Positions 5,407-59,962 of a DNA stretch of 64,000 nucleotides are shown piece by piece. Within the stretch, counting starts at the first letter, position 1, and every line of letters begins with the position of its first letter. The stretch is from Girardia tigrina (lineage: Eukaryota): contig MQRK01248982.1 of the NCBI GenBank assembly GCA_001938485.1, positions 1 to 64,000 on the forward strand, written 5' to 3'. The translations under genes were made by a program, and so were the position numbers. The notes below the pieces were generated by a model. That model searched no databases, was not told where the DNA came from, and worked only from the letters and a program-made list of their open reading frames with translations.

Positions 5407-8400
5407 GTAAGTAAAGAACAAGTTGTTTTTATCAAAATAAACTGATACTGACAGTAAAGGCATATTTGAGAATTGTGCCGGATTATCTTGACACAAGGTA
5501 ATTTCAAATATAGACAACCGCAAGACAAGAAAAGTATTCTAACACTCAGGAGTCACTGTACTTCCAGGTTTTTGGTTAATAATCTAATTTTCAGTAAAAT
5601 TTTTATAAACAATTTTCTTTCAGATTGACAATTAATAAACCCATTGAAAATATATTTTCTGGGATGCTGAATATATTTAGTTCCGATAATTTTAATATCA
5701 ACAAATAAATTTATGTACGAACAAACAGAAAACAACAGTTCCTTTGTTCTTATGAAAAAATACGCACAAAATAAGGCAATAAATAGATTTATAATTTCTG
5801 TAAAGGATTCATAAATTTTAAGTCGAAAAACGAAAAAAGTTCAACAAATTATAAAATTTGTTTAAACTAATCAACTAAAGTTGATTAATTTAATACTTAA
5901 ACAAGTCGGTTCAAAGTTCTTCAATAAAGAAATTCTATTATTTCTTTATGCTAATACTTTATGGATGCGGACCTTGAGGAAATAATAAATTTGAAGTAGG
6001 ATCTCGTTATTTTTTAATAATATTTTGGCTGTACTGCAATTGTCATTACTGCGGTTTTCACATATAAATTAGAATAATTTTATGAAATTGAAAAATTTTA
6101 AACATTATTAATACTTGAAATATTATTATTATTTCAATTTATTTCAATCAAATTTATTATTATTTTAAATATAATTATTTAATGAAATTTATTATTAATA
6201 CTGAGTTTTGTGAACGCTTATTCGATATTGTTGAAAAATCATTTTATTAAAGCTTTTTTAAGAAATTCATTTTTGTACATGTTTAGGAATATTATTCATC
6301 GTCAGCAATTATATTAATGTTTCAATGTTATTTTTATTTTGTCAAAGTAACATTTTATTTATTTATTTTAAGATGCTATTAGACAATAATGACAAAAATT
6401 TGAAAAATTTTAGGTGTAGATTCGTAGTGGCTCAAGTAAAAATAAAAATATGACAATATATAAAATATTATAAGCAGACCGGGGAAAATATTAAAAACAT
6501 ATTTTTAAATTTCTTTAAGTAACCTAATCTTTAAGAAAAATATCTATATTGATTGCGCAATAGATAACTTCTCTGATTTCTTTTAGAAAATATTTGTACC
6601 ACAATTTCAGATGGAAATAAATATTTAAAAATTTATTACACATTTTCAAGGTATATGTGATGTGTGAAGCATTGATGATTAAATATGTATTTTAATTCTG
6701 AAATCATTGTGCAAACACCATCTTCAACTTTATTACAAGTTTTTTATGATTTCAAAATTACATAATGATATATAAATGCAAATATATAACTGTTAGTTTA
6801 GTCTGATAATGACAGTTAATCTGTTGAAATAAAATAACAATAAATTATGTCGAAAGTTGTTTTCGAAACAATTTATCATCATTGTTTAAATATTGACAAT
6901 CTAATATGTTAGATTTTATTTTATTTAATAATAGAAATTACATTATTGTTTATGAAACATTATTTGTTTATTATTTCAGTGATGAGATATGGAATGATTT
7001 ACAATATCCTTGCTCGATTACCTACATGTCACCATTTGCTGCTGGTTTTCGCTTTCGATACCAGTCAGAAATCGATAAAAAGTCATACTCGTTATTGAAA
7101 ACTGAAGGCAACAAAGCGCCAGTTGTAAAAGTGGGAGCAATTTTGCAATTTAGCTTTTTTCTTATAAAATAAATTTTTAAAAATAATTTTAATTTAATTT
7201 AATTTCTTTTTAGTGAATATTGATTTAAAATTTAGTTCTTTTTTTTCATATAATTTTGAACTTAATTATTAAAGTAATTTTTTTTATTAATCATTTTTTT
7301 GCGTTTTATTAATGGTTATTATTGTTAATTGTTATTATTATTGTTTACTATTGCATAATAATTATTCATATTGTTAGTTGCATTTAAATCGTCTTCGATA
7401 TTCGAATTAGAATTCGCAATGATCAAAATTTTTATTAGAACAAATTAATAATTTTTGTTACAAACAAATTTTAACTGCGTTCTCAAAATCGATTCGCGGA
7501 CATTTTAATTCTCAGATTTTGATTAAATTTTTAAAAACTCAAACTTAAATAATCATGCCAAAACAATTTTTGGTGTACAAGCTTTTATAATTTGTCATAT
7601 GTTTGCGGTTCTGTATCTATTTCACCCACTTCCCACATTTTTTCACTGAATTATCAAAGCCTACTAGGCGAAAACCCGCTTACTATTTGCATTTAGATGT
7701 AGCAAATTTCAAAGCCTACTACTGAGGAAAACATGAGAACGACACTTTAATTACTTTTTTGCGGCCAAACTAAAGGCGGTAGATGAGCAGTGACAGTGAA
7801 AAAGTGTATTGTCACCTAGAATACATCCATCCTGAAAGTTTCATGTCGCTAGGTGAACGGGAAGTGGGTGAATTTTCGACCGCAAGATTTGATGCATCCA
7901 GACAGACAAACAAATGAAACGTAATAAAAGCTTGTAAAAATAATATTTAGTTCGACTTTAATTGAACCTTATTTAACCCTTCGTAACATGGTGTGACACT
8001 TCTGTAACAAACAGTTGCAACTTACAGGATCTCTAACTATTAACATATCACATTTTAAATCACTGTTGCATATCTGTTACACACCGATCTATACAACATC
8101 GGTAATTTATTAGTACCTACAGGTGGCGTTGGTGGTAGGATGATGAATTTGACAGATGAATTTTTTTAAGATATTGAGTTACGAAGGGTTAATTGGAACA
8201 AATGTTTTGTCATTAAATTAAGGTTTTATGAAAAGCAACATTTGTACAACAACAAGGGTTCGTTTTCATTAATGTAATCGCCATTACTTTCGATTATTCT
8301 TCTCCAATGAAGCTTCGACAAGAAAATTTCGCGGTGGTTTTCAGGTCGAAAAACTTTTGAAGGGCTTCTTTCTCGTGTTGATCTTTAATGAAGCGGCGTC

Positions 8401-14400: not shown

Positions 14401-17400
14401 TGATCTCATTTAATAATGATTTCTGCTCATGTTGATTTCTTGTTTTTAATATAATTATTGGTGATTATATTACTACACAAATTCATTAGGACTCGTAAAA
14501 TAATTCTTATTAAAAATTTTAAATTATAAATAATATGTACTTATTTGTATTATAGATGAATTAATTTGATATTTTACGATAATCTAAATACAATTCTAAA
14601 ATAATTTGAAGAAATCAAATAAAAAAGTTAACTAATAAAAATTTTATTCGCATTTAAAAATTTGTTCTCAAATTCAAAAGAATTCGGACATTTAATAAAA
14701 ATTATAATATAAATGTAGGCAATGAATTATTTTAAATTCAATATGGATGATTAGTAAAAACACATGTAGTTATTATTGTTTAAATATTTCAGTCGATTAA
14801 ATTTTCGTTATTTTTAAAATATGGTTCGTGGAAAAAAGATGCATACGAAAATGCATGAGAAAATATTTGCCATGCATGTTAAAGGAAAATCAGTAAGGGA
14901 AATTTCAAGAATTTTAGAGATAAGTAAATCGGCGGTGTTCGATAACATTAAAAAAGCTAAATACCGTCTGAATAACTCATCGCCAAAGAATTCTGGACGA
15001 CCAAAGTTGACTTCCGCTACTGATAACCGGTATTTGAAGAGGTTAATTCCTCAATATCGTCGTGCTACTGTTCAAGAAATCAACGAGAAATGGAGTATGC
15101 AAACAGGCATTTCTTCTTCTCCGTCCACTTGTCTACGTCGAATACAGGATTTAAATTATTCATTCTACAAGGTAAGATTTTCTTAATGAAATATAAGCAT
15201 TGCGTAACACTTTTTTAAGTCTAAAAACAAACCGTTTCTGTCACCTATTCAAAAGAAAAAGATACTTGAATGGGCTCTTAATCATAGTAAATGGAGCCAA
15301 AATGATTGGAATAAAGTTATTTTTTCAGACGAATCTCGGTTTGAATTGTCTATGGGCCGAAATGGAAAATCGGTCTTAAGACATAGTACTGAGTCATTAC
15401 TTTATAGAGGGCACAATGAACTCTACAAAGTATACCGAGATATTAAGGGAAAGTCTCATCCCATCTATTACACAATATTTTGACAATGGAGATTTCATTT
15501 TTCAACAAGATGGAGCATCTTGTCATACTTCTAAATTTACAAAAACTTGGATGATGAAAAATAATGTCGTTCTGGACATGGCCTTCAGGAAGCCCAGATT
15601 TAAGTCCCATAGAGAATGCTTGGGCAATTATGAAAAAAACATCCTAAAAATGAAATTGATTTGAAGAATAAAATTTTAGCAATATGGAATAGTTTTCCCA
15701 TTGATAAATGTCAGGATTTATACAATTCAATGAATAGAAGAATGGAAGATGTCATGAAAGCAAAGGGCGATGTTACAAGATTTTAAATAGCAGATGTCCG
15801 AATTCTTTTGAATTTGAGAACAAATTTTTAAATGCGAATAAAATTTTTATTAGTTAACTTTTTTATTTGATTTCTTCAAATTATTTTAGAATTGTATTTA
15901 GATTATCGTAAAATATCAAATTAATTCATAATACAAATATTATTTATAAAACGATTTTAATTAATCGAATAATATTAATTAATATTTTGTTTAAAAATAA
16001 ACTTGTTAAAAAATTTTATTTATTTATTGTCTTGTGATGTAAAATGAATGAGATGAGTGAACATTTGATTAATAATTGATAAATAATGAATAAAAAAATT
16101 GTATACAAAATAGGAAAAGTTAAGTAACCTCAATTTTAAATATTTTTAATAATTTTTAATACTATTTTGATCATTGAATAAAATAAAATTGAACTCAAAT
16201 TTTTGTAATATTTTTCCTTAATAATATTATTTTGTAATAGTTTTTTTATTAAATATAATTAATAATTTTGAATTTTGCTACAACTTATTTAATATTGTAG
16301 CAAACCAATTTTCTTAATGCTCGTTTTAAACATAATCATTGTACATGTTTCAATCTTACATGTATCATCCTCATTAATTAAACAATTTTTAAATGTAAAA
16401 TAAAAAAACAAAAATGTTACATAAATAAATGCAGTAATTAACAATAGTACTTAATAATAAAATATATAATTAATAACAAGTACTTAATTACTGGTGATGA
16501 TAAATGTAAATCTAAGCATGCCAACAATAATATTTCAAAATATCTTTTTAATTAATTAATAATAATATTATGATTTATTGTTTAAAAATTTTAGACTTCA
16601 GCTTGATTGAATTGTATTTTGGTTTTAGGTTAGTACTTTTGTACCAGATGCGATCTTTGTTCTTCAATTAGTTACTGATAAAGAAGATAATCCACATTTT
16701 AATATGATATACGAAGTACTGAAAGATAAAACTGTCAATTATGTAAATGATGGAATGTTTTCTCTTCATCTCTCGAGTCCTGGTGACCATGAAATCAAGT
16801 TAATTTTCTTCATCAAAAGTCGATTAATGAACAAATAAAAAAAAATTTAGTAATGTTGGACTCTAATAAATAAATATAAATAAATTCTAAAATACTTTTT
16901 CAATTTTTGTTAATTGTTTTAAATTTTTATTTTAAGTAAATTATTTTTTTTTAATTATAATAACATTTATATCATTAAAATTAGTCAAAATATGTAATTA
17001 TTGGAAAACTAAATCTTTCATCTCAAGTAGTTGAAAACTTTTTGTAAGATTCAAAAAAGATATCAATAGTAAGAACATTGAAAGTGTATTCGAAAGCATT
17101 TTATAGTCAATGAAGAAATCCGAAAGATGTTGTAGTAAACAATTTACAAATAAAAAATATTAATATAACTACCACGGTTGCATAGTGGTTGTAGTGACCC
17201 AGTCAATTATTATATATAAATTATATATAGTAAATTATATATAAAATTATATATATATAAAACAATCGATAAAAGTAATCATTAATATTACTGTTTACAA
17301 TTATACTATATTGCCTGCGGGGCGTTTTCTTGTAAAATCGGTTCGTAAAGGAATTTTCTGCAAACCCAATCAATATTCCCCCTGAAAGTGCTCCTCTTCA

Positions 17401-23400: not shown

Positions 23401-26400
23401 ATTCGTTATATTGGAGTTGCGACAAAAGATCTATTCTTTTGTCACTCTATTCCTGTCAATGCTAGTTTGACAGATATGAAATTCAAAAGTGAAAAGGCTT
23501 AGCAATGCGTACAGGCAACACAGATCATTGGTTGGATAAATTTCAGAGTTGTTTTTTGAACCCTAATCTCAGACAAATATTAGGAATCAAGTTCATCCCA
23601 AAAAATGGCCAGTCTCCGGTAAAACTTTTAAATTTCATTAAAAGTCGTTTTATGAATCAAGAATTGTTCATTTTGATATGCAATAAGATGGGCAGTGAGC
23701 ACATACAGCTTCTGCTACAAATTGAAATTTGTTGAAAGTGCCTTGAAGTTTCTATTTAGATAAATCAGTTTTAACTTACGTGGGATACATCAATTGATTT
23801 AAAAAATTATGAAACTATAATCGATATTTAATCTCAAGTTGACGCTGACATGACATCAAAATCATATTTTAATAATTTGACAACAAAAGAAATAAAAATG
23901 TCATGCTGAAAAGTGAATAAGAGAATAGAAAAGCTCGTGTATAAGTCATTGACAATACATTCATCCAACAACAGAAGGATAGCATCGATCCATGGGAATC
24001 ATCCATCCTTCCCGTGTATGCAAACATGTTAGTTGCTTGGCTGTAATCCCATGAAATCCATTTTCGGGATGTGTTCAATTCAATTCGAACACTCACTTTC
24101 AATACTGTTTTAGTTTCATCTAAAATAATATCATTTGTAATTTATTGAACCTTGGTTCATTAATGTCATAGTGTTTGTCAGATTTTATCAGCTTTATTAA
24201 CAAAAATTAAATCAAGGTCAACATGGAACTTGGTTTAAAATTTTTTATAATATAAGACCCCTTAGATTTCATTAACTTTTTTAAAAGCATAATTTTTAAA
24301 AAAAATTATTAAAAAAAAGTATCGGTTGGTTGCAGCACGGATGTTGATGATGTGCTATTTGTTAAATTCCATCACAGAATTTAATAGATTCTGAAATTAA
24401 CAATCCAAACGGAACTGGATATATTCTATGTGGAATTTTTGATTCTGTGGAAATCATATATCTATGATGGTGGCAAATATGAACTAAGATCATATGGAAA
24501 TTATAAAAAAATGCATCCGTTTGTGCAAAATATGCTGTAAAGAAATACAATTTAGGTCCAATCTGCTTGATATTCTTGTAAAAAATTGCATTTCAGTTGA
24601 TTTTGAAGTAAATATTTGTTATTCATTTGTGTATCGTGAATTGTAGATGTAATAATTGAAATCATTAAAATCTGTGGAGATATATAATAATAATAGTAAT
24701 AATAATAATGATTATAATAATGATTATATATTGAACTTCCTCGGAATCTATTCACTTATTTGTCACAGTCTCTATTACATCAAATAGGTAACAGGTATAA
24801 ATTTAATGATGAAAGGAAATGTTTTACAATATTTTCTTTGTCATCTTAATATAATCTTCATGATGTTTGAAATTCATGTATTTTAAATCTGTGGTGCTCT
24901 GCCCAATGGTAATGAATATCACATTTCTGTTGAAAGTACATATATCGTTCCTCTGGATAAGTTTAATTAAAAAATGTATTATCAAATCTATAAAAATTAG
25001 CTTTTTTTCTACCAACACTAATAAAAAAGTTAACTGCAAATGGTTGACAATCAAATCTGATAAATTTTTCTTCATTATTTTTCATCTTTAATTTCATTTT
25101 ATTAAGAATAAATATTTTTCTTAAAATTATTTTTAATGATTATCTTATGCCATGTTATATTTCTTCCCATATTTATTTATATTTACAATATTTTATTTTA
25201 ATTTTGATATTTTCAGAAATCTATCCTGATATGAAAGTTTCTGATGCAAAAGCTTTTTTTAACAAACATAAAGATGTAGTACGACTGAAAGCCACAATTT
25301 TGATTCAAGATATTCCATCAGTGTATACAATATCCGATCCAATTAAGTCGCAAAGTGAGCTTGAATCATGTTGATCAGTTTATTAAGATCATTATCTCTT
25401 AGTTTCAAAAGAGAATAAAAACATAAAAATCAAACATTTTTCTCCAAAAGTTGTAGCCGAAATGGGAGAAGAATTGATTGTTGTTTTAGAGAAGAAAATA
25501 ACTAGTAAATATTTTTATATTGGATTGAAGGAAATGAATTTTTAAATTGAGTCTATATATTATTTCCTATTAATTATCATAATAAATCAGATTTCGTTAA
25601 TATAAAAAGTAGTTATTGACAAAATAGTGTTCTCTCAGAAGATTAACTCAGAAGAAATCATAATTTTATTTTCGTTTGTATTGTTTAACTAACTTTATAA
25701 TCAAATTGATTTCACAATTTTTAAGATACACTCCTTAAAATACAAGTGATTGAGGTAAGCCTCTAAAATTAGTCAATAAGAGTCATTTTAAACAATGTTC
25801 TATCCGCACTACATATCCAGTTATATAGAATTTGACTCTATCTATTCGACTATGAATGACAGTCAATTCAGTTTACCGTTTATTAAGGTCCATATACTTA
25901 AATAACTTTTCTCTTGCATATTCGTGAGTCCTAAATCAGCTACTTCATTTGTAATTGTGATATTTCACGAGAACCCGAAGCAGATGAGAACAAGTCATTA
26001 ATACTACTTCTACATTATATTCTTGTTTGACTTGTCTTTGATTTGATTGTCGCTTTCAGCCGTCTACCTGCTTTTTAACATTTGTTGCAGTTGTCAATAG
26101 AGCAATTGAATGATTTTCCTTCTTGAGTTTTGGTTTTCATATAGCGTGCTTTTCTGATGTGTTTGTTTAGTTCTTTCCATGAAACAATTCGGTTGTATGT
26201 ACTGGATTGTTTTAATGGTACCACGTAAAACGTCGAAAAAACATCGAAAATAAACATCAAATATAAAACGTCAAAAAAAAACGTGGAAAAAAACGTGGAA
26301 AAAAACGTGGAAAAAAACGTGGAAAAAACGTGGAAAAAAACGTGGAAAAAACGTGGAAAAAAAACGTGGAAAAAAACGTGGAAAAAAACGTGGAAAAAAC

Positions 26401-29400: not shown

Positions 29401-32400
29401 TACCTTAACTATAAATATGATTTTAAAGTTCACCAAAAAACCCTAACAAAACTTATATAATACATTCGTTAAATTATAACTACGGATATAAATGCTAACA
29501 AAATGGATATTATCGGGCAATATCATAACAGTTCTGATTTTTAACTTGTAGAAAGGTAAAGTAGTGATAAAACTTAATAAATTGATAAAATTGTTATTTG
29601 TGATGATTATTTTAAAACAAAATGATCTTTTTTGTGATCGATTCGTGTTATATTGACAGAAATAAATTAAAGATAATATAATAATCTTTATTTGCAATGA
29701 AAATATTTTTATGTTTACAATTTTTACTTATTTGTATGATTTTTGTCACTTATTTTCATAATAATTTTATTTTCAGCTAATGAATTCAATTCTTTTTTGA
29801 TTATTGAAGGCAACAAACATCTATTAAAGTGCATCGAAGAAGATGGAGTAATAATTTTTAAAGTTATATTTTGAGATTTTTCTTTTTTTGTCTTAGCAAA
29901 CGTTTGTTTTTAATATCCCAAAAATTGCAAATCCAAATGCAGTCGACGCAAAGTTTGTGATGATTTGTGGAGACAGTCAAGATTCAAAATTAATTAAATT
30001 TCTTGCAGCAACAAACGGTATGAAAATTGGAGATTATTTTTTATTATTATTTTTTTAACAGATAAAGAATTTAATTTATAACAAAATTAAAATAAACTAA
30101 TTTTTTAAAAAACAAAAATTAATCGAATATTTAAATTATAATTTTTTTTAGAAGCAAATAACAAAGTTATTTTAGATTTCAGAATCTGTACATTTGATCT
30201 CAAGAAAAACTCATTTTATTAGGTTGAGGAATATGTTCCCGCCGTTTTTTGAATTTTTAATCAATTTTTAATCAATTTAATATTTAAATCAATTTTTTTG
30301 ATGTGGTGTTATATGTTATTTTAAAGCTATTGTTTTGCTCTAAACAATGGTGTGTTTTGTTTTTTTATTCAGATTAATTTTTGCCGATTTTTAGACCATT
30401 GAAATGGAGTGTCAAGTCGACAAAAATGAGCATTTCCGACACCATCTATTGTTTGCGTATAATCGAGGCGCCGAAGCCGCAGACGCTGCCTGAGAGCTTT
30501 GTGCTGTATACGGAGACGGTGCTATAGCTGATAGAACCGCTCGTGATTGGTTCGCAAAATTTAAAATTGGCAATTTTGACCTCAAGGATGCACCTCGTTC
30601 AGGACGACCAAATGAATTCGATGAAGAGCGTTTGAACAAATTTTTGTATGAAGACGTGCGTCAAACGACTCGAGAATTGGCGGAACAAATGGATTGTGAT
30701 AAAAAAACTTTCGTGAACCCCCTGAAATCAATGGGAAAAGTTCAAAAATTGGAGCTTGGGTCCCACATCTTTTGACCGAAAACAAAAACCAGCGATCCAC
30801 AATTTCGGCGAGTTTGCTTGCCCGTCATCGCTCTACTCACGGTCATAAGCAAACAATTTCTTCCAGTCAAGACCGGGCGATTTCTACCAAAGAGGCATTG
30901 AAAAACTCGTTGAACGTTGGGAAGAAGTCGTGAACAATGGCGGAGATTATATTTGTGATTAATTTGTAGCTAATTTTTCACAAAACGACGGGAACTTATT
31001 CATCAACCCAATAATTTATTTTTTAAGAGGCATAATCAAGGGATTATCAGACAAACATTACGTGAAAATAACAGTAAATAATAACGGATTAAAACCGATA
31101 TCTTTTTTGAAAACCAGATTAGGTTTCATCTTTTCTTTTTTGTCTTGACTACTTACGGTTTTGAAATTCATATCGTAAATATGAACCATAGATTTCGGTT
31201 TAGTATCTTTTTTAAACATACACAAAACGATGGAAACCGTATCGGTATCCTTATCGAAATACGAATCGATTGAAACGACCTCAGATGTCACAGTAAGATC
31301 GGGAAATTCTAATTGTTTAACTGTCGCATAAATCGACTTATTGTTGGATTCGGTCGATAGGAAATCACAGTGTTTAATGATAGATTCGCTCGGTAGAGCT
31401 GGTTTCAAATAAAAAATCAAAAGATAATTGAAAAATTCTTTGAAATCGCGAAAGTTGTCATTGGAAATATAATTGGAATGGCATATGAAATATCATTTTA
31501 GGTTGCTGAATATTTCTTCAGAAGAAATGTTTGGAAACAATTCCTGCTTTAAAATTGCAAATCTCAGTACGTAAACCTGAACAATAAACTGGATTGGCTT
31601 CAAAAAATTCTGCCCCGTCACCAGCAGTTCCCAAATCGCCGATTGTTGTTGATAAATCTCATTTGTAGAATTAACTAATTCATTTGATACAAACTGTGTC
31701 AGAACAGAGTTCTTTTCTGATGATCCAGACCGCCTTCTTTATAATGTTTACATTACTCATGAAATAGTCGATATAATTTTGCAAGACTTCATGTTATAAT
31801 CATTTTAAACTCTTATTTTTTCTTTTGGTAATATTTAAACAAACATTAAAATACTCTACTAATTAAATAGCATGTAGATATGTTTAGAGATTGAGATTTT
31901 AAAATTTAAAACGTGAAAAACATTGTTAAAACCATAATATTTCCTGAAGACAGAATATATCGTTCAAGGGACACAGATGCAATGGAAGCATAGTTATCGA
32001 ACCAGAAATTCTACTTGTCATTGAAAGAAACTTAAAAGAGCTTCTTCGTTACAGAGGGAATGACGGCGACCGCATTTTGAAAGAACAATTAAAAATAATA
32101 ACTAAAAAGCTTCATACATTAGTAAAATAATATAAAATTAATTAAATGAATGCTAAGGTAATCGGAATACTTGTATAGTATTATAATTATATAATCCAGT
32201 TAACTATTTTTTTGGGCTGTCTTAGATGAAACAACAGATTTTATTTACATCTCACAATTAAATATATAAGTAAGCTATCTTTATAAAAGTAAGAATGGAG
32301 AAAAGTTTTGTAAATATTTTAAAGACGTACTTAAATTCTTTGATTCCAAAGTTACAGATAAAGTTCTTTGGAAACTTATTCTTGAGAATTTAAGAAATAC

Positions 32401-35400
32401 TGACATAGATATCATTTAATACATCAGTATTTGAAGAGTAAGATACTCAATGATGGTTTCTAAACAGACTAGTTATTTTGTTGAAGTAAAAAGTAGCAAT
32501 ATTTGCTTGTAAATGTTTTTTTAAATACCATCCTTTCAGGCCATATGTTATTCTGTAAGAGAAATTGAAAACATGTTATCTTTTATATGTATCTGCAAAG
32601 TATCTGCAGCGTGAAGATGGTGGAAAATCACCAAAATATATAGCAAAAATAAATTTTACTTTTTTGAATTGCGTTATCAATCAGGATCAATGTTATGTTT
32701 CTTTACTAAAATGTTTTGTTGCGGTCAAGTACCAAAATCATCTTTAAATTTTATTTCAGAACCAAGAAAAAGAAAAATAAACGCAGTTATGAACAGTAAG
32801 TACAGTTGAATTAATTTTTAATTTTAGATTTATATTTAATTTCAAATTTTTAAAGTGTTCATATAGTTTCTGAATGCTTTAATATTTTGTTTTAAATGGT
32901 GAAATATGTAAGTGGAATGAGGAAAATGTACATATTTTATCAAATAATTTAAGATTTACTCAAATAAAATCAAGGTTTAAAGTTAATATCTTACGTTAGA
33001 ATCTTAAATTATAAAATCAAAAAAGATAAATTCGGAAATATTTTGACACAATCGGTTTTTACTTGTTATAGAAGATTATTTTCTGGGATGAATATCTAAT
33101 TCTACAACTAAAAATAATCGTATTTTTAAAAATTCTTTTAAAGAAACTGGTAAATCTGATTTCTTTAGTTAAGGGTAATAGAAGACCGACCAAATGAGGG
33201 CATGACAATTAAGGCTTAAAAAATTAAACCTCAGACAAGTGAGTCTTAGAAAATCAAGTCTTGAACAATTAAATCTCAGATGATTAAGTAGCAACATGTT
33301 TATTATTTACAATTATAAAGGAAAATCATAGGTCCATTTTTAAATTTTGTGTAAGGCCGCACAAGTATTCAATAATGGTTCGCTGGCTGCTTCTTGATAC
33401 TTTCGACGTTCTTGTGGTCGCTGTTGGTCACGAATAAATTCTTCATATTCATTGTCGCGAGTGGCTTGAACAGCTTACAGCAAATCGATAAAACGCCAGA
33501 TAGTCAGTTGGTCCGCACAGAGCTCCGTTTGTAATCGTTTATTAGTTGATTTAGAAAAGTTATTTGTGTGATCGTTGTTGTCCTAAAAAATAAACTATTG
33601 GGTTGGCCAAAAAGTCTTTTTTTTTACTAAAATATTTATTATCAAAAAATGACATGGATGCACAAATATTTTTACACGATATACTGTCCATTATTTTCAA
33701 TCACTTTCTTCCACCTTTCCGGTAGCTTCATTATTCCNNNNNNNNNNNNNNNNNNNNNNNNNNNNNNNNNNNNNNNNNNNNNNNNNNGTCATCATCACTG
33801 GCGAATGTTTTTCTGTTTAAGGAATTCTGCAGTGATCTAAATAAGTGAAAATCCGATGGGGCCAAGTCTGGAGAATACGGTAGGTGCGGCAAAACCTCCC
33901 AACCCAGTGATAAGTTTCTGTCGAGTGGTCAATCTTGTATGTGGTCTTGCGTTATCATGCTGAATTACAACTCCTTTTCGATTTACCAATTCAGGACGTT
34001 CCTGTTGAATTGAATGAGCCAATTTCTCCATCTGTCTGAATTGATGGTTTCATTCCTCGGAAGGAGTTCAAAAAACACAATTCCTTTAAAATCCCACCAG
34101 ACGGAAAGCATAACCTTCTTTTGGTGAATTTCTGCTTTTGGGATCGTTTTGTAGATGTATATATATATAGTATGGATCCTTAATATTGGATCATTAAATG
34201 TAAAAATATGTTTTTTTAATGTGTTTATTAAATATTTTAAAATTAAAAATAATATAATTAAGAAAATCATTAAAGATTAAATACTTATTTAAAAATAAAA
34301 ATTTTTTACAGCCATATATCAATTTATATATTTTAATAAAAAATGAAATAATTTTAAAATAATTTTTTTGTTTTAATGTAAAAATTATTTTATAAATTTA
34401 AAGTTTTAAAATTTATTAAATTTTAAAAGTTGAATCAAAAGAAAAATTTAATATATTAATTTTTGGCGAGATAATTGAATTAACAAGAAATTTGTTTAAA
34501 TATGTGAATTGTTGTTATAAATATACAGGGTGTTCCACAGGTTATTTTTTTATGTTAAATTGAAGTTTAGGGTCAATATATTGAGTATTGACTAATAACA
34601 TTTTTTTCAAAAATCTAGAATCATATAACAACTTACGTAACAAAGTTTTTCAAAAGATTTTGGAAAAACAAGTTAAATAATGACTCATTTATAGATTATT
34701 CAATTTTAAACAACTTTTTTGAAATAAACAAATGCTCTAAAATGAACAGTTACAAAGTTATTCAACAAATTATAAGTTTTAAAAATTTTGATTTATCGAT
34801 ATTGTTGGGGTTCCGAAAAATATAAATTAAATTTTTAAATCTAATAAAAAATTTAAAATAATTCGCTGGTTAAAATTAATAATTTTTTGATTAATATAAT
34901 AGTATTTTAATAAAATTTATAAAATATTTGTAAATATTTTGAGATTTGTTTTAGTTATTCAATTTTCAAGGTTAGGAAAAACTAGTATATAAGCAATAGT
35001 TATTTCAGTTACAGACGCCCCATTTGATCACTCAAAAGAAATTTAACTTTAAATTATATGTGTGGTAAATTTGTTGTTTGATTTCTTATATTATTATTTT
35101 TTAAACTAAAGAAATAATAGAAAAAGTTTTTTAGTATCCTGTAAAGGAGAAATTAAGCTTTAAATAAATTGTATATTGAGAAAGTAATAGTATCCTGTAA
35201 AGGAGAACATAAGTTTTAAATAAATCATTCTATCATCGCTCGAACTAAGAAGTTGTTGTAACTATTTGATCGAAGTGTGATCTTTGAATTTTAGCGTATT
35301 GATAGAGTTGAATTTATATTTGTACTTCAATTGTTGTTTGCAGAATAAATTATTATTAAAAGGTCTTGTTCATTCTTCATATATTATTGTTGGAAGAAAC

Positions 35401-38400
35401 CTTTTCTTTCATTTGGAGTCAGATTAGTAGTTGAATATAAATAAAGAATAAAACGAGTTTTAATTGTAATACCCAACAATATTTAAATTAATTTCATCGA
35501 TTAAAACAATAAATCGATTAATTTGTGATTAAATTTTGATCCATAGAATCCATATTGTTTATTTAGTGTGTTTTAGTTTAGACAGTGCTCAAGTTTCATC
35601 TTTATTCAGCGAAAATGAACCGATATTCTACAGAACAACGATGTTTTATGGTTTTATTTTATCGGGATACGAATTCACCATCAGAAGCGGTTATATTATT
35701 CAAGAAAAAGTTTGGAAATCACCACAATATAGATCCAAAGACATTTAAAAGGTTAGTAAAAGGTTTGTAAATTACATATTATGCTGGTGTAAATTTAACT
35801 GAATCGCCCTGTATTTACATTGATATGTTTCTAACTTAATATTTATTAAAAATTATTCCAGAAAATTAGTCTCGCATTACATTTTACAAAAGTTACATTT
35901 CAAAATAAAATTTTGACATGATAATCTTTTATTCACAATTAATTAGTTATAAATTATAATTATTTCTTTCATAAAAAGTCTTTATTTTTTATTTTTACAT
36001 AAAAATGATTACAATTTCTTTTAATTAATTTTGATTGAATAATTGGAACAAGGAAAGTTTGTTAAAGAAACCATTTAATGAAATAAAGGATTTTATCATA
36101 AAGTTTTTTGAGAAGAGTAAACTTATAATTAACTCTCTTCCTAATAATATCAAAACTTTTCAAGAAATCCGTCTTAAGTTTGTGTTAAAATGAAAAGATA
36201 ACTTTAAATCTACCAATGAATTTAAAGTAAAGCTGTATTCTTTGTGAGGAATATTTGGTGTGTGGATGTTTTTGTGTAGTGTTTGCATGTTTAAATGTTG
36301 TATGTTGATTTGTGATTGTGCCTCTCCTAACCAGATGGATTATCAATATTTAATTTCTTATAATCTGAAACTAATTTATATAAATTTAGATTTAATATTC
36401 AAATTTTTAATTTTTATTATTACAACTTTTAAATAATTTTATTGATTTTATTTTTGTAAATTTTTAAATAATTAAAATCAAATTTATGTTTAAAAATGAC
36501 TATAAAAATATTTTATTTCAGCCAATAAAATTTAAATTAAATATTTTAAAATAAAGTGGTCTTCTCAAGTTAGTTCAGATTATAATGGGAGATATTGAAA
36601 ATTGATTGATGGATCTAAGTGAAAGCAATACTATTGATCATCATAAAGATGATAAAAAATGTGAATATAATAAATGTTCTGGCAAATGTGTGAGTTCTCT
36701 TAATAAATTTATATATATATATATATATATATATAAACTTATATAAACTTATATTTAAACAAGAATAAAAGTTTGATTTGATCAAGGACGTTATCAGTGA
36801 ACTGATCTAAGTTCAATGCTGATGGTAATATATAATTTATTTCTACCTAAATATTTTCGAGATTGAGTAGTTAATTGTTACATTATTTTTCTAAAGTAGT
36901 TTTCGAATATCTGTTTTCTAGATGAGTGTCCGTTAAAACGACCTACAAACGACCGTGGGGAGGCAGTTACACAACCATGCCCAGAAACTACTTATATTGA
37001 AACCGATGGGGCAATAATTGATACACCTTTACCGAATATGACTGGGGATTATCCTAATGACAGTGATTCTTGTCATGATTCTGGCATTCATTCTAATGAT
37101 AGATTGTCGGATAAAAATCTTAGTGACGATGAAATGGATTGCTCAGATGGAGAGAGTAGTGATGAATTCGTAGAAGTAGAAGGATTCAGACGACGTAAAG
37201 ATAATGTAAGTCCTGAGAGATTGATTCGTGTGAATGGGAAAGTCAGATCCAGTGAAAGTCGATTGGACTCTGCTAATACATCGAGTGAGTATATATTTTT
37301 TAATACATAAAATTTTATATTTTAATATAAAAAGCGTTTAAATTTGAACTTTTTCGAAAAAATTTAATGATTATAAATTTAATGAAATCAATGTAAAAGG
37401 ATGTTTATCAGTAATTTCGAGACCAGATTTTATCTTAAATATTTTATTATAGTTTTTCAAATATTAGGCCATGAAAACCTATTTGTTGTTTTACATTTAT
37501 TTTGTTCAATGCAGTCTCTATGTTTCCCCTAGATACTGACCGGTGGTAGCAGTGAAGCAATTGTGTCGTTTATCGGTTATTTCGTACTGGGTGCATTTTA
37601 TATTATTGTTCATACAAATCATCATTTTGATTAATTAAAATATTGTTAATGAATCAATCAAGTTCCAAACAAAATTCGTTTTCAAAGTGAATTTTTTTTA
37701 TTCGTTTTAAATTCGACTGGGAAAAATATTTCGATTTCAAATATTAAATTCAGAAAATAAAATTATTCGGCTCACAAAATATCAGATCGTTCTTAAAAAT
37801 CAGTCGATATATGTAAATTCAATCGTCAAAGTAATAAACATAAATTCAATCTTAAAGATTGAGAATCGACAAAAAACAGTTACTTCAAATTATGAGGGGT
37901 TAATTTAAATTTTCATCTCACCAGAATAATTTATTATTTTTTCAATTTAAAAGGTAAAATATTTTAATGTTAATATGCTTATTAAATATTTTAAAATTAA
38001 AAATGATATAATAAAACAACTATTAAAAAATCAAATACGTATTTAAAAATAAAATATTTTTTAATGTGTTTTTAAATATTTTAAAAAATTAAAAATGATT
38101 AACAAAAGAAAATCATCAAAAAATAAATATCTATTTAAAAATAAAAAAATATTTTTTTAATGTGTCTATTAAATATCTTAAAATTAAAAATGATAAGAAA
38201 ACCATTAAATATTAAATATTTATTTATAAATAAAAATATTTTTACAGTCATAACAATTTATATATTTTAATATAAGTTATGAAACAATTTTAAATAAATT
38301 TTAAAATAAATTTTTAGTTTAATGTGAAATGTATTTAAATTTGCAAGATTTTGAAAATTGAATCGAAAAGAATTTAATAGATTAATTTGTGGCGGGATAA

Positions 38401-41400
38401 TTAAATTAACAGAAAAATTTTCTTAAATATGTGAATTGTTATTATATTAATATATTTTGATGTTAAAAAAATGAATTCAGATATTGATGTCTATGTAATA
38501 TCTGAAATCAGATATTGATGTCAGATATTGATGACTATGTAACATTTGAATTTTTTATCATTGTCGTCGTATTGATGAAAGCAACGTATCATCGAATATT
38601 AAAAATATCGAATTATATTCCCGAATCGTTTTTGTTGTTGATTATTGGAACCATTTTCGGAGTGTTAGTTGAATTCATTTTTAAACGAGAAACTTATAAC
38701 TTTGCCGTTTACGATAAGTTATTTGTTTCCTACAAAGAAGAGTGAATTATGCTCTCAATGGGCTTAGTACACTGATGATGATTCACTGCGTAATCCTGAT
38801 ACTTCCGTCCGGTTCTTGGGGAAACTCAGGGATCGGGTAGAACACTTTTGGAAAAGATCAATCAATTTCTGAAATAGATATTTAACAGTTTTGTTTTAAT
38901 TTGCATATTGAAAGTCTACTTTAATTATTCGGAAGAAATCGAAGAACTCTTTATTACTAAAGTTGTTTGTTTCCGGTGGTTGATATTTCAATCGATAATT
39001 TTTTAACAGATTCTCCATCATCAATTGAAAATATAAAATATACAGAATCGTTTTTTTTAATCTAAAAAAGGCGACAGTTACAATCATTCGAGATATTTCC
39101 ATTTGATTCTCGAACATATGTCAATATTAAAGACAATATTATATAACGCTTCAGCTTACTCCTCTGTTAATTGTTTTCAGGTTGTTGCCACCCTTTGGGG
39201 ATATCTTTTTATTTTTCCCTCAGATTAAAAATTTTCTATATCATTAAAACTGAGATTTTCTTAACAGAAAATCACTTCTTGCAACTGTTTGTAAATTTCG
39301 GTGCGGTCAATATTTCTTAGAAGAAACTTGATAACACTATTATACTTGATTCCAATAAAGTCCTGTTACACAACAAAATAGTTTTCTGTGATATATATAA
39401 CTGTACATGTACTATCCACATCGTTGCATACAATATAATATGATAACATTGTGGTTGTTGATATACATTAAATTATAGAATATTCTAAAGACTTAATTGA
39501 CCACACAACACGACTGCTAGTTTAATTTAGAGGATTTTAACCACTTAACACTAGGCTACGAATTAACTCGTCAGATCTTTATCGTACAAAAATGTTTTTA
39601 TTTAAAAAATATTCGTATATTAAAAAATTAGAAATTTATATATATTATTGTTATTTTATTTTTATTCTCTATTTTAAATAATAAAATTATGAAAAAAATA
39701 TTTTTACTTGATGAAAATCCTGAAATTCACTGTTAAACATTATTTGAAACATACGTGGTACGATCCATAAGTCCTTAGACTCCACAAGAAAGCAATGTCC
39801 AATCAACTTTATTTTTTCAGAATCAGTAAATGACATCAAAGTAAATCATTTCTCAATGTATGAGCTGTGTACATCAACACACTTGCACCAGAGAACAACA
39901 AGCTCAGAGAACGCATTTTTGTAAAAATTTGGAGGCGAAGAATTGAGAATATCAATGAATTTCACCTTGAGAACATCAACTGAATGAAAGTGGATATCTT
40001 TCAAATGTTTCTTTAGGTGTTCAAACAACACAAAATCACTTGAGGCTATGCCAGGGCTATAGGGGGGTGGGTGGGGAACCAAATGAAAATCCCAGTCATC
40101 CACAGCAGTCAAAGTTGCTCGCAAAGTGTGAATGGGTGCATTGTCTTGAAGGAGCCACAAGGGATCCCTCTTGGCTTCCTACGAGACTTTCTCATATCGC
40201 AAAGTAATTCAACATAATACTCACTATTCATTGTCAGTCCTTTCTCAAGGAAATCAATTTTAATAATGCCATAGGAATCCCAGAACACAGTCAGCATTGC
40301 TACTCGCTTGTGCGAGGTGCCACTTCGAAGTTTTTGGGGAGCACTTTCATAGGGGAAGCACCACTCAGAAGATTGACGCTTGCTCTCAGGCACATACCAG
40401 CTCACCAGGGTTTTATCTTGTGTAACGATGTTGTTGATGAAGCGATCACCATGAGTGCGAAGCAACTTCAAATTGTCAGTGCGACACTGCAATCGTTTGT
40501 CGCACATTTCACCGGATAGGAATCGCGGAACAAAACGTGAACACAGTTTACGAATTCAAAATGATTGCAGAATATCATTTGTAGAATGGTAGCTGATGGA
40601 TAGACGCTGTGCAAGTTCACGGATGCGTATTCATCTGTCTTCCGACACGATCTTCATGCACAAATCACTTTTCCCGGGTAAAATTTCACACGGTCTTCCT
40701 GATCTCTGAGCATCAAAAACGGATTGTCGGTCACGTTTAAAGTTTCTGATCCAATTATACACTGTTGCACGTGATCAGCACTGGTCACTGTAAGCTTCCT
40801 GCAACTGCTGCAAAATATTGCAGCTTTTAGTATTGCGCAGGAGCAGAAATTTTATCACGCTGCGATATTCGACGTTACTGTCCATGTCTACAGTAAAAAG
40901 TGAAATAATGGCTGTACGCACCACTCATACACACAGGTTGGATATGGTGAGTCATATCTGTAACCAATGATAGCTCATCTATTTATAGTATCAACGGCAT
41001 ATACGTCATAATCTTATTTATCAACGATTCTAAGGACTTAGGAATCGCAACACGTAGAACGCATCCTAATATTCCAACAAGATCTGATTACTTCTTTACT
41101 GAAGTACGAAGAACAAGGAAACTTTAAAAACATTCATTTCGTTTACAAGGTTCTTGAATTAAATACAGATTTCATTTCATTTTATACGGCTTTTGTCTTA
41201 CAAAGAACGTTTTTAAAATTTTACAATGCAAACTTTACTTTTTTTCACGTTTTTTGTAATGTTTTTCGTAGAACGAATCTTCGGTGGAATAAGTCTAATT
41301 ATCGTACAATTTATAATTTAATTTAAACAACAACAGCGTGACACTCGAGAGTACATGTATTTTTATAATTTATATTTTCATTATTTTGGTTTATATTAAT

Positions 41401-59400: not shown

Positions 59401-59962
59401 TTATTGAAGTCTCATGATGCGGTTGATCTTTCTCCTCGTTCGGAACCCGATCATAATGTATTATAAAGTCAAAGTACCAAATAATTATTTACATTTGATA
59501 TTTTAGATTGATGATTCCGAAGATGAAATCGATGAAGACAATGATGATAATTCGATGAATTGTATTGAAAGTGATCCGTTAATACCGAAAAGAAATATAC
59601 CAATTGAAATGAATGTTTACCAAGAAAGTCAAACAAATAATAACGTAAATGGTTTGACCGAATCAATGAGGCAAATGAGTTTGAGTGGAGATTTAAAGCA
59701 CCGATTGATAAATCTTTTGCTACTTTCACACGAACCCACTTTGAACATTAATGAGTTACAGCAAATTGTGAAGCCACAAATGAATGTAATTTTCAAAAAA
59801 TACGTCAACACAGAAAACCATAAAAAAGACGTATCTGAGCTTTTGGATCGGATGAATTGTTTACCGGATTCTGTGGGGCAGTTAGTTGAAAGTCTTCAAA
59901 AAATTAGGCGCTTTGATTTAATTCAAAAGATACAAAACAATCTAGCGAGCACAGTAGAGTGA
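5382..59962 (+). CDS. NFKB: Spliced NF-kB p105/Relish-like gene (RHD-IPT-NLS-linker-ankyrin repeats-death domain), about 846 aa from 16 exons; the first two exons are tentative
   Basis: Exons 5382-5406, 5455-5497, 6980-7130, 16629-16798, 18030-18088, 25217-25354, 25403-25504, 29777-29847, 29897-30017, 32760-32795, 36922-37284, 41480-41621, 54869-55146, 55197-55445, 59321-59457 and 59507-59962 join through GT-AG introns with compatible phases (2541 nt, no internal stop). Motifs appear in the order expected for p105/p100/Relish: GFRFRYxSE, LVT..PH, NLGI, VVRL..SDPI, IPT, RKRK, HDFA..QDDVGDTPL, ankyrins, death domain. Confidence 0.9.
5455..5497 (+). CDS. Candidate exon 2 of the NF-kB-like gene ([14 protein letters not shown])
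   Basis: CTGACAG acceptor and AG|GTAATT donor; phase 1 in and phase 2 out, which fits the exon at 6980. Confidence 0.45.
6980..7130 (+). CDS. NF-kB-like exon: RHD DNA-recognition loop ([50 protein letters not shown])
   Basis: GFRFRYxSE matches the Rel signature RxxRFRYxC/SE; TTTCAG acceptor, GTGGGA donor. Confidence 0.9.
7576..7936. mobile_element. MITE-like element
   Basis: Terminal inverted repeats tacaagctttt...aaaagcttgta; no coding capacity. Confidence 0.6.
7977..8188. mobile_element. piggyBac-type MITE
   Basis: TTAA duplicated on both sides; TIR CCCTTCGTAAC / GTTACGAAGGG. Confidence 0.8.
9055..9230 (+). repeat. Diverged copy of the 3' end of exon 6980-7130 plus its donor and adjacent intron
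   Basis: tgaaggcaacaaag....ttgtaaaagtgggagcaattt matches 7103-7143. Confidence 0.75.
10687..12053 (-). mobile_element. Decayed Tc1-like transposon
   Basis: Imperfect TIRs (gcaaaagtatctgaccacc / ggtggtcggatgcctttgc); transposase starts at 11869 ([14 protein letters not shown]...) and has frameshifts and stops. Confidence 0.8.
14543..15939 (+). mobile_element. Tc1-like (DD34E) transposon with long inverted repeats; transposase 14821-15786 has a 48-nt intron, an internal deletion and frameshifts
   Basis: HTH and GRP motifs, [29 protein letters not shown]; identical inverted repeat at 14556-14691 / 15794-15929. Confidence 0.9.
16629..16798 (+). CDS. NF-kB-like exon: RHD ([25 protein letters not shown]...SSPGDHEIK)
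   Basis: LVT....PH motif of the RHD; TTTTAG acceptor; phases 0 and 2 fit the neighbouring exons. Confidence 0.85.
18030..18088 (+). CDS. NF-kB-like exon: RHD ([19 protein letters not shown])
   Basis: NLGI..K motif of the RHD; TTGTAG acceptor, GTGAGT donor. Confidence 0.88.
18570..20520 (+). mobile_element. Internally deleted Gypsy LTR retrotransposon (gag-like segment joined to RNase H end and integrase)
   Basis: [17 protein letters not shown]...C..CQ zinc finger, [23 protein letters not shown]; polypurine tract agggggg followed by TG at about 20418. Confidence 0.88.
22200..22600 (+). mobile_element. Mariner transposase remnant
   Basis: Degenerate DN...H and YSSDL..C (YSPDLAP) motifs. Confidence 0.5.
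23250..23760 (+). mobile_element. hAT (Buster/ZBED5-like) transposase remnant
   Basis: FSVQL(D)ES..LA..LV.IRY...DLFFC and [10 protein letters not shown]...F..IC..MGSEH.QLLL. Confidence 0.7.
25217..25354 (+). CDS. NF-kB-like exon: end of RHD-N (...[28 protein letters not shown])
   Basis: VVRL and SDPI motifs; TTTCAG acceptor, GTGAGC donor. Confidence 0.88.
25403..25504 (+). CDS. NF-kB-like exon: IPT start ([33 protein letters not shown])
   Basis: Follows a 48-nt intron; resembles IPT 'LKI....G...GEEI.LL..K'. Confidence 0.8.
26215..28165 (+). mobile_element. Mutator/MULE-like element remnant with a tandem-repeat terminal region
   Basis: Array of aaaacgt(g/c)ga at 26227-26490, with an inverted counterpart at about 28120-28160; transposase remnants YIG..FP..RTNNA (about 27030-27160) and [11 protein letters not shown] (about 27890). 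Confidence 0.65.
26275..26460 (+). repeat. Tandem repeat of about 12-nt unit (aaaaaaacgtgg)n
   Basis: Directly visible array of about 15 units with variable A-run length. Confidence 0.95.
29777..29847 (+). CDS. NF-kB-like exon: IPT ([23 protein letters not shown])
   Basis: TTTCAG acceptor, GTAATA donor, phase-compatible. Confidence 0.72.
29897..30017 (+). CDS. NF-kB-like exon: IPT end ([40 protein letters not shown])
   Basis: Follows a 49-nt intron; resembles the IPT pattern 'Q.AIVF.TP....S.P..F.Y'. Confidence 0.8.
30219..31011 (+). mobile_element. Internally deleted mariner
   Basis: TA-flanked TIRs ttaggttgaggaatatgttcccgccgttt / aaacgacgggaacttattcatcaacccaa; transposase starts at 30404 ([14 protein letters not shown]), with WVPH and a C-terminal ERWEEVV remnant. 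Confidence 0.9.
31058..31370 (-). pseudogene. Kaptin (KPTN)-like gene fragment
   Basis: [27 protein letters not shown]...HIY...IGFNPL resembles kaptin [26 protein letters not shown]...NIY...LQFTPF (recalled from memory). Confidence 0.6.
31440..31790 (-). pseudogene. RhoGEF DH-domain (PLEKHG5/7-like) fragment
   Basis: Manual translation [26 protein letters not shown]...EEIFSNL resembles QQEAVWELLHTE..YI...LFSNI; in-frame stops present. Confidence 0.6.
31900..32480 (+). mobile_element. hAT (ZMYM1-like) transposase remnant
   Basis: [14 protein letters not shown] and [11 protein letters not shown] remnants. Confidence 0.6.
32760..32795 (+). CDS. NF-kB-like 36-nt exon carrying the NLS ([12 protein letters not shown])
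   Basis: TTTCAG acceptor, GTAAG donor; basic RKRK directly after the IPT domain, as in Rel proteins. Confidence 0.82.
33598..34150 (-). mobile_element. Truncated mariner (3' half)
   Basis: [20 protein letters not shown]; TIR ttgggttggccaaaaagtc. Confidence 0.85.
34190..34520 (+). repeat. AT-rich dispersed repeat, also present at about 38050-38445
   Basis: Shared blocks ttttacag.cat, ggcg.gataatt.aattaaca and taaatatgtgaattgtt. Confidence 0.7.
34526..35811 (+). mobile_element. Non-autonomous Tc1/mariner-superfamily element
   Basis: TA-CAGGGTG...CGCCCTG-TA ends; transposase N-terminal remnant [13 protein letters not shown]...FKKKFG. Confidence 0.65.
35330..35478 (+). repeat. Solo-LTR-like fragment, related copy at about 57780-57966
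   Basis: Shared ttggagtcagatt and aaagaataaa blocks; both end in tgtaatac.caaca. Confidence 0.55.
36922..37284 (+). CDS. NF-kB-like exon: acidic/Ser-rich linker with IETD|G and DSGIHS motifs
   Basis: TTCTAG acceptor, GTGAGT donor; open in frame with ORF 37038-37310. Confidence 0.82.
38525..38741 (+). pseudogene. Na+/H+ exchanger (SLC9/NHE)-like exon fragment
   Basis: [13 protein letters not shown]....[16 protein letters not shown] matches the NHE TM2-3 pattern 'LAK..FH....VPES.LLI..G'. Confidence 0.7.
39754..41054 (-). mobile_element. Full-length but inactivated mariner
   Basis: TA-flanked TIRs cgtggtacgatccataagtccttaga / tctaaggacttaggaatcgcaacacg; transposase 40885-39846 with [22 protein letters not shown] and [10 protein letters not shown]; frameshifted. 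Confidence 0.92.
41480..41621 (+). CDS. NF-kB-like exon: pre-ankyrin helix ([47 protein letters not shown])
   Basis: Resembles p105 'ALFDYAVTGD...AVQDENGDS'; GTAAGC donor; splicing to the next exon gives GDTPL. Confidence 0.88.
41717..43400 (+). pseudogene. Multi-pass membrane protein (possibly gustatory-receptor-like) gene fragment interrupted by an RT insert
   Basis: [12 protein letters not shown] followed by hydrophobic helices ([31 protein letters not shown]); GTAAGT...TTGCAG intron at about 43287-43348; stops and frameshifts. Confidence 0.35.
41882..42687 (+). mobile_element. Isolated Gypsy reverse transcriptase fragment flanked by 70-bp direct repeats
   Basis: [53 protein letters not shown]; repeats at 41812-41881 and 42688-42757. 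Confidence 0.85.
43890..44644 (-). pseudogene. Nup214-like N-terminal beta-propeller fragment
   Basis: [21 protein letters not shown]...AYCVSWSPK resembles Nup214 VIDMKWNP...VTSVCWSPKG; stops and a frameshift; truncated after WSPK. Confidence 0.55.
45268..45494 (+). pseudogene. Ubiquitin-like domain (one frameshift) ending in GG, leading into the Gag-like region
   Basis: FPIFMK...[10 protein letters not shown][fs][44 protein letters not shown] aligns along the full length of ubiquitin. Confidence 0.85.
48459..51925 (+). pseudogene. Disrupted ~1150-codon accessory/env-like membrane protein ORF of the retroelement
   Basis: ORFs 48459, 49017 and 49473 share one frame separated by single TGA codons; frameshifts lead to ORFs 50041, 51432 and 51584; TM helices at about 49689-49751 and 51525-51596. 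Confidence 0.6.
53560..54391 (-). mobile_element. Truncated pogo/Tigger transposon (5' part)
   Basis: TA-CAGTAGAACTCGATTAA TIR; [10 protein letters not shown]... CENP-B-like HTH remnant. Confidence 0.7.
54869..55146 (+). CDS. NF-kB-like exon: ankyrin repeats ([10 protein letters not shown]...GHSALILA...GKSAIIYAI...LLNH)
   Basis: Three ankyrin consensus units; TTACAG acceptor. Confidence 0.9.
55197..55445 (+). CDS. NF-kB-like exon: ankyrin repeats (YTPLQIAL...ESALHIAV)
   Basis: Follows a 50-nt intron; ankyrin motifs; GTGAGA donor. Confidence 0.9.
56728..57300 (-). mobile_element. MULE-like remnant with (ggggtcaaaac..)n terminal tandem array
   Basis: Tandem array of about 15-17 nt at 56730-56855 spanning a gap; degenerate transposase C-terminal remnants nearby. 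Confidence 0.45.
57970..59051 (-). mobile_element. Decayed mariner
   Basis: [25 protein letters not shown]; TIR end ttttccggacaaccc-ta. Confidence 0.85.
59321..59457 (+). CDS. NF-kB-like exon: last ankyrin repeat ([11 protein letters not shown])
   Basis: TTTTAG acceptor; TALHVA motif. Confidence 0.88.
59507..59962 (+). CDS. NF-kB-like terminal exon: acidic stretch plus death domain (...[21 protein letters not shown]), TGA stop
   Basis: Follows a 49-nt intron; the C-terminal helices match the death-domain pattern 'TV..L..AL..I.R.D....I'. Confidence 0.85.
   Translation: MDDSEDEIDEDNDDNSMNCIESDPLIPKRNIPIEMNVYQESQTNNNVNGLTESMRQMSLSGDLKHRLINLLLLSHEPTLNINELQQIVKPQMNVIFKKYVNTENHKKDVSELLDRMNCLPDSVGQLVESLQKIRRFDLIQKIQNNLASTVE

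Follow-up and report, generated by a model that had tools for sequence, protein, structure and literature searches.

Conserved caspase-type and β-TrCP-type motifs in the linker of a putative class I NF-κB precursor from the planarian Girardia tigrina

Exon structure and domain identity

The analysed stretch of DNA (the window, 64,000 nt of Girardia tigrina contig MQRK01248982.1) harbors an NF-κB gene whose 14 exons extend from 6980 to 59962 on the + strand, with AG/GT ends and matching phases according to a splice and phase check. When joined, these exons give an open frame of ~844 codons, to which an unlocated first exon has to be added. The gene is single-copy in an AT-rich genome of 1.43 Gb. 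The encoded protein is best read as a divergent class I NF-κB precursor of about 850+ amino acids with a predicted RHD followed by an NLS, an acidic linker, six ankyrin repeats (ANK) and a death domain (DD), encoded as follows.

5961-5995: candidate coding exon further upstream of 6980, where at least one is expected
6980..7130, +: RHD exon with DNA-recognition loop GFRFRYQSE (7044-7070); sequence, AG/GT ends, phase
16629..16798, +: putative RHD exon 2; splice sites and phase, no informative database match
23573..23694, +: tentative RHD exon 3 with LGIKF motif; sole phase 2-to-1 candidate in the gap
25217..25354, +: putative RHD exon 4, closing the N-terminal subdomain; splice sites, phase
25403..25504, +: putative IPT/dimerisation exon 1; phase, 39% identity to the paralogue exon (shuffle p 0.0005)
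29777..29847, +: IPT exon 2, a phase-compatible candidate
29897..30017, +: putative IPT exon 3; phase, weak likeness to the paralogue and P0143
32760..32795, +: 36-nt NLS exon with PRKRK (32762-32776); contigs of four runs splice it to the linker exon
36922..37284, +: acidic linker exon, predicted disordered, no glycine-rich region (GRR); translation, contigs, single copy in the genome
41480..41621, +: first part of ankyrin 1 (QDDVGDT), preceded by the helical cap; contig-joined to the linker exon, 85% identity to P0152
54869..55146, +: ankyrin repeats 1-3; Pfam Ank_2 E 8e-07, 77% to P0152
55197..55445, +: ankyrin repeats 4-5; Pfam, 67% to P0152
59321..59457, +: ankyrin repeat 6; 67% to P0152, phase
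59507..59962, +: acidic stretch, death domain and stop; Pfam Death E 0.009, no DSG-type degron in a motif scan

Read support is confined to the two junctions flanking the linker exon. For the ankyrin and death-domain exons, support comes from an orthologue, P0152, and for the RHD exons from splice sites, phase and motifs; the tentative exon at 23573-23694 occurs once in the genome and keeps the frame. The region 36400-36700 appeared exon-like at first and is in fact a repeat, and the candidate exons 17300-17640, 26954-27169, 31948-32127 and 37533-37631 were dropped on account of stops, phase or being skipped by the contigs. The introns also hold broken remnants of Tc1/mariner and gypsy-like transposons (14821-15783, 18757-20511, 30395-30960, 39846-40507), an antisense gene-like fragment (31058-31790) and, between ankyrin exons, a large retroelement-like insertion (45268-52900) with long ORFs at 48459-51925 that gave no Pfam matches.

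Searched exon by exon, the RHD returned no match in Pfam, the PDB or the Atlas, nor against the conserved RHD gene of the genome. Its assignment is supported by the FRFRYxSE loop (here GFRFRYQSE), by the length of ~290 amino acids up to the NLS and by literature on the ankyrin family. As in class I NF-κB, a basic NLS (PRKRK) stands at the end of the RHD and is spliced to the linker; RKRK is likewise found at the start of P0152. The frame stays open into IκB-family ankyrins recognized by Pfam, which thus belong to the same polypeptide as NLS and linker; via the orthologue, their best PDB match is Bcl-3, with IκB-α and IκB-ζ also matched. A death domain follows at the C-terminus. Its Pfam Death match is weak, and a fold search with a model of the orthologue's domain gave the FADD DD at a moderate Z of 7.9, with death domains on top and matches that were nearly all death folds. 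The model of whole P0152 is poor (pLDDT 40) and served merely as a hint of linker disorder, residues 1-135 being devoid of secondary structure at this low confidence. The earlier note had placed the motifs discussed below between RHD and ankyrins, a position that holds with an RHD recognized by motifs and family membership instead of a profile match.

The linker exon and its conserved motifs

The linker exon measures 363 nt (36922-37284) and has the boundaries ag/ATGAGT...TCGA/gtgagt. Contigs of four public runs cover exactly 36922-37284, and their overhangs map to 32760-32795 and 41480-41621. The runs are presumed to be RNA, and the intron-free joins reveal spliced molecules in which the exon is not skipped, a possibility that the earlier note had raised, but spliced in between the NLS exon and the ankyrin 1 exon. 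Four features of the exon are relevant here.

36996..37010, +: IETD/G, candidate caspase site; translation and orthologue alignment (IETD/S there)
37056..37094, +: 13-residue block in which DSGIHS (37077-37094) is a consensus β-TrCP degron; degron table in PMC10317156
37173..37199, +: EVEGFR(R)R, third conserved linker block, absent from the earlier note; orthologue alignment
37266..37283, +: DSANTS, probably not a degron; not conserved

IETDG and DSGIHS are translated in one + strand frame, and the absence of a glycine-rich region is confirmed by a maximum of two Gly in any 20 exon residues of both species. DSANTS, put forward as a weaker motif, is present in the same frame but is not kept in the orthologue and was rejected as a second degron. 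A motif scan of the last exon and of P0152 residues 400-552 found no C-terminal DSG/DSA-type degron.

Three of the four runs are identical to the window across the linker exon, and the fourth (X10) carries 12 substitutions causing eight amino-acid changes, none of them in the motifs; since the chance of missing the motifs is 0.31, this sparing is uninformative. The X10 differences (37195, 36957-36958, 37044-37045 and others) include two Gly-to-Met double substitutions, indicative of a fast-changing linker. In shuffled exons, DSGxxS arises with a chance of 0.014 and DSG-hydrophobic-x-S with 0.003, compared to 0.004 for IETD and 0.04 for [ILV]ExD[GSA]. As these figures are post-hoc, conservation is the stronger test.

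P0152 is the sole orthologue found that covers the linker. Its ankyrins and death domain are 77% and 45% identical, respectively, and it groups with the window exon in a tree (support 91/93). Both IETD and DSGIHS are kept in P0152, so that the conservation on which the earlier note had made its idea depend is observed, if in two species: protein searches and a metagenome scan yielded no further linker-bearing orthologue. Under four alignment settings, the two linkers share just three identical runs of at least four residues, namely IETD, DSGIHS and EVEGFR; their identity outside the conserved blocks is about 28%. The residue after IETD is G in the window and S in P0152. The degron block reads ND(S/T)DSC(H/K)DSGIHS(N/D)DR across both species (NDTDSCK-DSGIHS in P0152) and is the longest conserved linker stretch (12/16 identical).

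One or both motifs might be conserved for another reason, for example as a docking site, or IETD might have been kept by chance between two related species, an explanation that we consider improbable. It would fit that only two sequences are compared, that a run of four residues at 28-41% identity has a probability of about 0.006-0.03 per site, that EVEGFR is as conserved with no known role, and that both IETD-G and EVE-G follow a hydrophobic-E-x-acidic-small pattern. Yet IETD and DSGIHS had been singled out ahead of any comparison with the orthologue and both proved conserved, while the weak DSANTS did not; for the halves preceding the degron, a shared 4-mer of any kind has a chance of 0.014. 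Within the third block (37173-37199), (V/I)EVE/G echoes IETD/G, with Glu at P1 and basic residues after it.

The genome contains two RHD-ANK genes, the window gene and a paralogue on contig C250332. This paralogue and P0143 possess short linkers with neither caspase site nor degron. The candidate first RHD exon of the paralogue (G000:C250332:484-14153; L030, L031) displays an eroded DNA-recognition loop. Where PSCNV and LTR elements carry copies of the ankyrin module, these copies open with the cap helix and likewise contain neither motif; among viral sequences, the ankyrins are closest to the 41,178-nt planarian nidovirus contig. LTR-retrotransposon-like polyproteins (RT, RNase H, integrase, protease) from freshwater assemblies (L034:1-6660, L035:3-7106, P0019, P0025, P0028, P0029, P0131, P0017) carry an intron-less copy of the NF-κB ankyrin module that is 46-63% identical, with a membrane-like tail behind it; a DEDD exonuclease ORF is also present in L034 and L035. 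Judged from these polyproteins, this looks like repeated capture of an IκB mimic by LTR elements, parallel to PSCNV. Planarian Burro elements contain ankyrins according to the available part of PMC6431247. In addition, P0151 and P0014 fuse a ubiquitin-like domain to the same NF-κB-type ankyrin module.

Cleavage, degradation or both

The motifs could encode a Relish-like caspase cut followed by β-TrCP-mediated clearance of the ankyrin-DD half, a reading that we hold to be not quite an even prospect. An initiator caspase of the caspase-8/Dredd type would cut behind IETD, some 35-40 residues beyond the NLS, and separate RHD-NLS from degron-ANK-DD, the latter staying bound as an IκB. Phosphorylation of both DSGIHS serines would then recruit SCF-β-TrCP, which would destroy the inhibitor half and spare the no longer linked RHD for entry into the nucleus. 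The cut may thereby replace the missing GRR by keeping the proteasome off the RHD. We can only infer that the cut would come before degradation.

This cut followed by destruction is favored by the presence of IETD and DSGIHS among only three conserved runs on a 28% background, by the motif order of cut, degron and ankyrins, and by the lack of both a GRR and a C-terminal degron, as in the caspase-using Relish. The IκB-family ankyrins and the occurrence of β-TrCP and a QACQG caspase in the genome point in the same direction, as do the motif-less PSCNV/LTR copies, which is what would be expected of non-degradable IκB mimics. The change from G to S after the cut also agrees with it, both being small residues that caspases accept at this position.

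As to the components that the earlier note had invoked, β-TrCP is encoded in the genome (D domain, E 1e-12). Among its many caspases, one on contig C210159 has the caspase-8-type QACQG motif; Pfam did not confirm a DED prodomain for it. The upstream ORFs of this candidate caspase-8 (G000:C210159:57247-78736, − strand) are DED-like by eye. A CARD-caspase that lacks introns and has SCCRG as an unusual motif at its active site was also observed (L002:1099-2247; G000:C232091). The IKK-β scaffold domain and NEMO found no match in the genome, which does not imply their absence; as they were not detected, the kinase could well be one other than IKK. The DSG degron of Cactus, for instance, is served by the non-IKK kinase Pelle (PMC3781037).

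Several observations count against the favored sequence of cut and destruction. It relies on one orthologue, the paralogue manages with neither motif, EVEGFR is equally conserved yet unexplained, and the RHD has no profile match. The unmatched IKK-β scaffold domain and NEMO and the unconfirmed DED weigh in the same direction, with the caveat that absence is not implied. The cleaved ankyrin half in Drosophila is, moreover, not degraded (PMC8677719).

A further objection concerns the lysines, which are located at exon residues 5, 64, 92 and 106, with the degron at 52. The 23-29 residues from cut to degron contain no conserved lysine and, in the window protein, none at all; the lone lysine in this interval of the orthologue sits directly ahead of DSG (-1). 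In IκB-α, acceptor lysines precede the degron by about 10 residues. The fragment that the earlier note had called IκB-α-like does have DSGxxS N-terminal to the ankyrins, but it does not have these lysines. The proposed two-step switch is thus partly supported, by both conserved motifs, the splicing, the absence of a GRR and of a C-terminal degron, and the presence of β-TrCP and a QACQG caspase, whereas DSANTS is not conserved. Since the fragment of the window protein carries lysines only on the downstream side of the degron, ubiquitin would have to attach there. A GSK3 relay in the style of β-catenin is unlikely, as neither species has S/T four residues after the second serine.

The lysines conserved upstream (NLS, PLK) are N-terminal to the cut and could be used in the intact protein alone. 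They would suit the main alternative, judged rather unlikely, in which the degron acts on the uncut precursor and IETD serves solely in apoptosis or never. Conceivably, β-TrCP ubiquitylation destroys the whole protein, similar to the signal-induced degradation of p105 that releases bound Rel partners, or the proteasome processes it partially from the disordered linker and spares the folded RHD, comparable to the partial processing of Ci/Gli3. The degron block, as the longest conserved stretch, resembles p105 SVCDSGVETS; it also resembles NRF2 NDSDSGIS (both PMC10317156), and the p105 likeness may therefore be convergence. No separate IκB with a DSG motif was found among the ankyrin matches scored, which does not imply its absence, and the precursor may hence itself be the inhibitor. 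On the other hand, degron action on the uncut precursor leaves unexplained why an exact IETD with a small next residue persists where the linker diverges most, and processing would have no GRR at which to stop.

Alternatively, activation could be purely Relish-like: the caspase cut activates, phosphorylation within the DSG block permits cleavage or adjusts activity, the C-terminal half remains stable, and β-TrCP has only a minor role. The missing upstream acceptor lysine would be in line with this, as would the facts that Drosophila IKK is needed for Relish cleavage or activity and that Rel-49 persists undegraded in the cytoplasm (PMC9496462, PMC8677719). However, D, S, G, the hydrophobic residue and the second S are kept exactly, as β-TrCP binding would demand, whereas a simple phosphorylation site could vary more freely, and we regard this option as quite improbable.

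Should the cut indeed be followed by β-TrCP-mediated destruction, triclads might, tentatively, use a third route of class I NF-κB activation, in which a caspase generates an IκB in situ and a β-TrCP degron on its N-terminal side removes it. Such a two-key switch would provide a living model for the origin of free IκBs from the C-terminal half of a precursor, and the degron-less PSCNV/LTR copies would represent non-degradable inhibitors of it. If both motifs work, the caspase route of flies and the proteasome route of mammals would not be exclusive but could be chained in one polypeptide. With two conserved, point-mutable motifs, this can be tested directly in an animal amenable to RNAi.

Comparison with known NF-κB systems

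Little has been established on class I NF-κB activation beyond insects, vertebrates and cnidarians. A literature search, with most subscription journals outside its scope, found no class I NF-κB described with a linker combining caspase site and degron. The RHD-ANK gene type itself is already known in planarians. As stated in the available part of PMC6211748, the ANK domain of PSCNV is closest to the planarian RHD-ANK proteins SMU15016868 and SMU15005918. The accessible portion of a 2026 paper (PMC13563047) reports seven divergent RHD genes in Schmidtea, including the class I homologue SMEST009320002.1, and describes planarian NF-κB as hard to identify, with the best candidate essential on RNAi and knockdown of the most Relish-like RHD gene lethal. 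At the level of layout, and as far as these partial sources go, the Schmidtea proteins share with the window gene the RHD-ANK arrangement, two paralogues per genome and ankyrins near those of PSCNV; the same parts of PMC6211748 and PMC13563047 describe neither linker motifs nor an activation mechanism for planarian RHD-ANK proteins.

The predicted RHD-NLS-ANK-DD layout is that of p105/p100 and of cnidarian (Aiptasia) NF-κB, and a β-TrCP degron is a further common trait (p105 SVCDSGVETS). p100/p105 and Aiptasia NF-κB rely on C-terminal phosphosites and a GRR as stop signal (PMC5700166, PMC8677719); unlike these proteins, whose degron is C-terminal to the ankyrins, the window protein has its consensus degron N-terminal to them and no GRR. 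DSGxxS ahead of six ankyrins is instead reminiscent of IκB-α and Cactus. These are separate genes with no death domain, in contrast to the window protein, which in turn differs from IκB-α in having no acceptor lysines upstream of the degron.

Relish is cleaved at LQHD/G. With Relish, the window protein shares the absence of both GRR and C-terminal degron as well as a putative caspase consensus in the linker (IETD/G, and IETD/S in the orthologue). Drosophila Relish has no GRR and no C-terminal IKK sites and carries its caspase site in the RHD-ANK linker (PMC5700166, PMC8677719); its ankyrin half escapes degradation after cleavage, and the proteasome takes no part (PMC8677719). Unlike Relish, the window protein has a consensus β-TrCP degron after the cut site.
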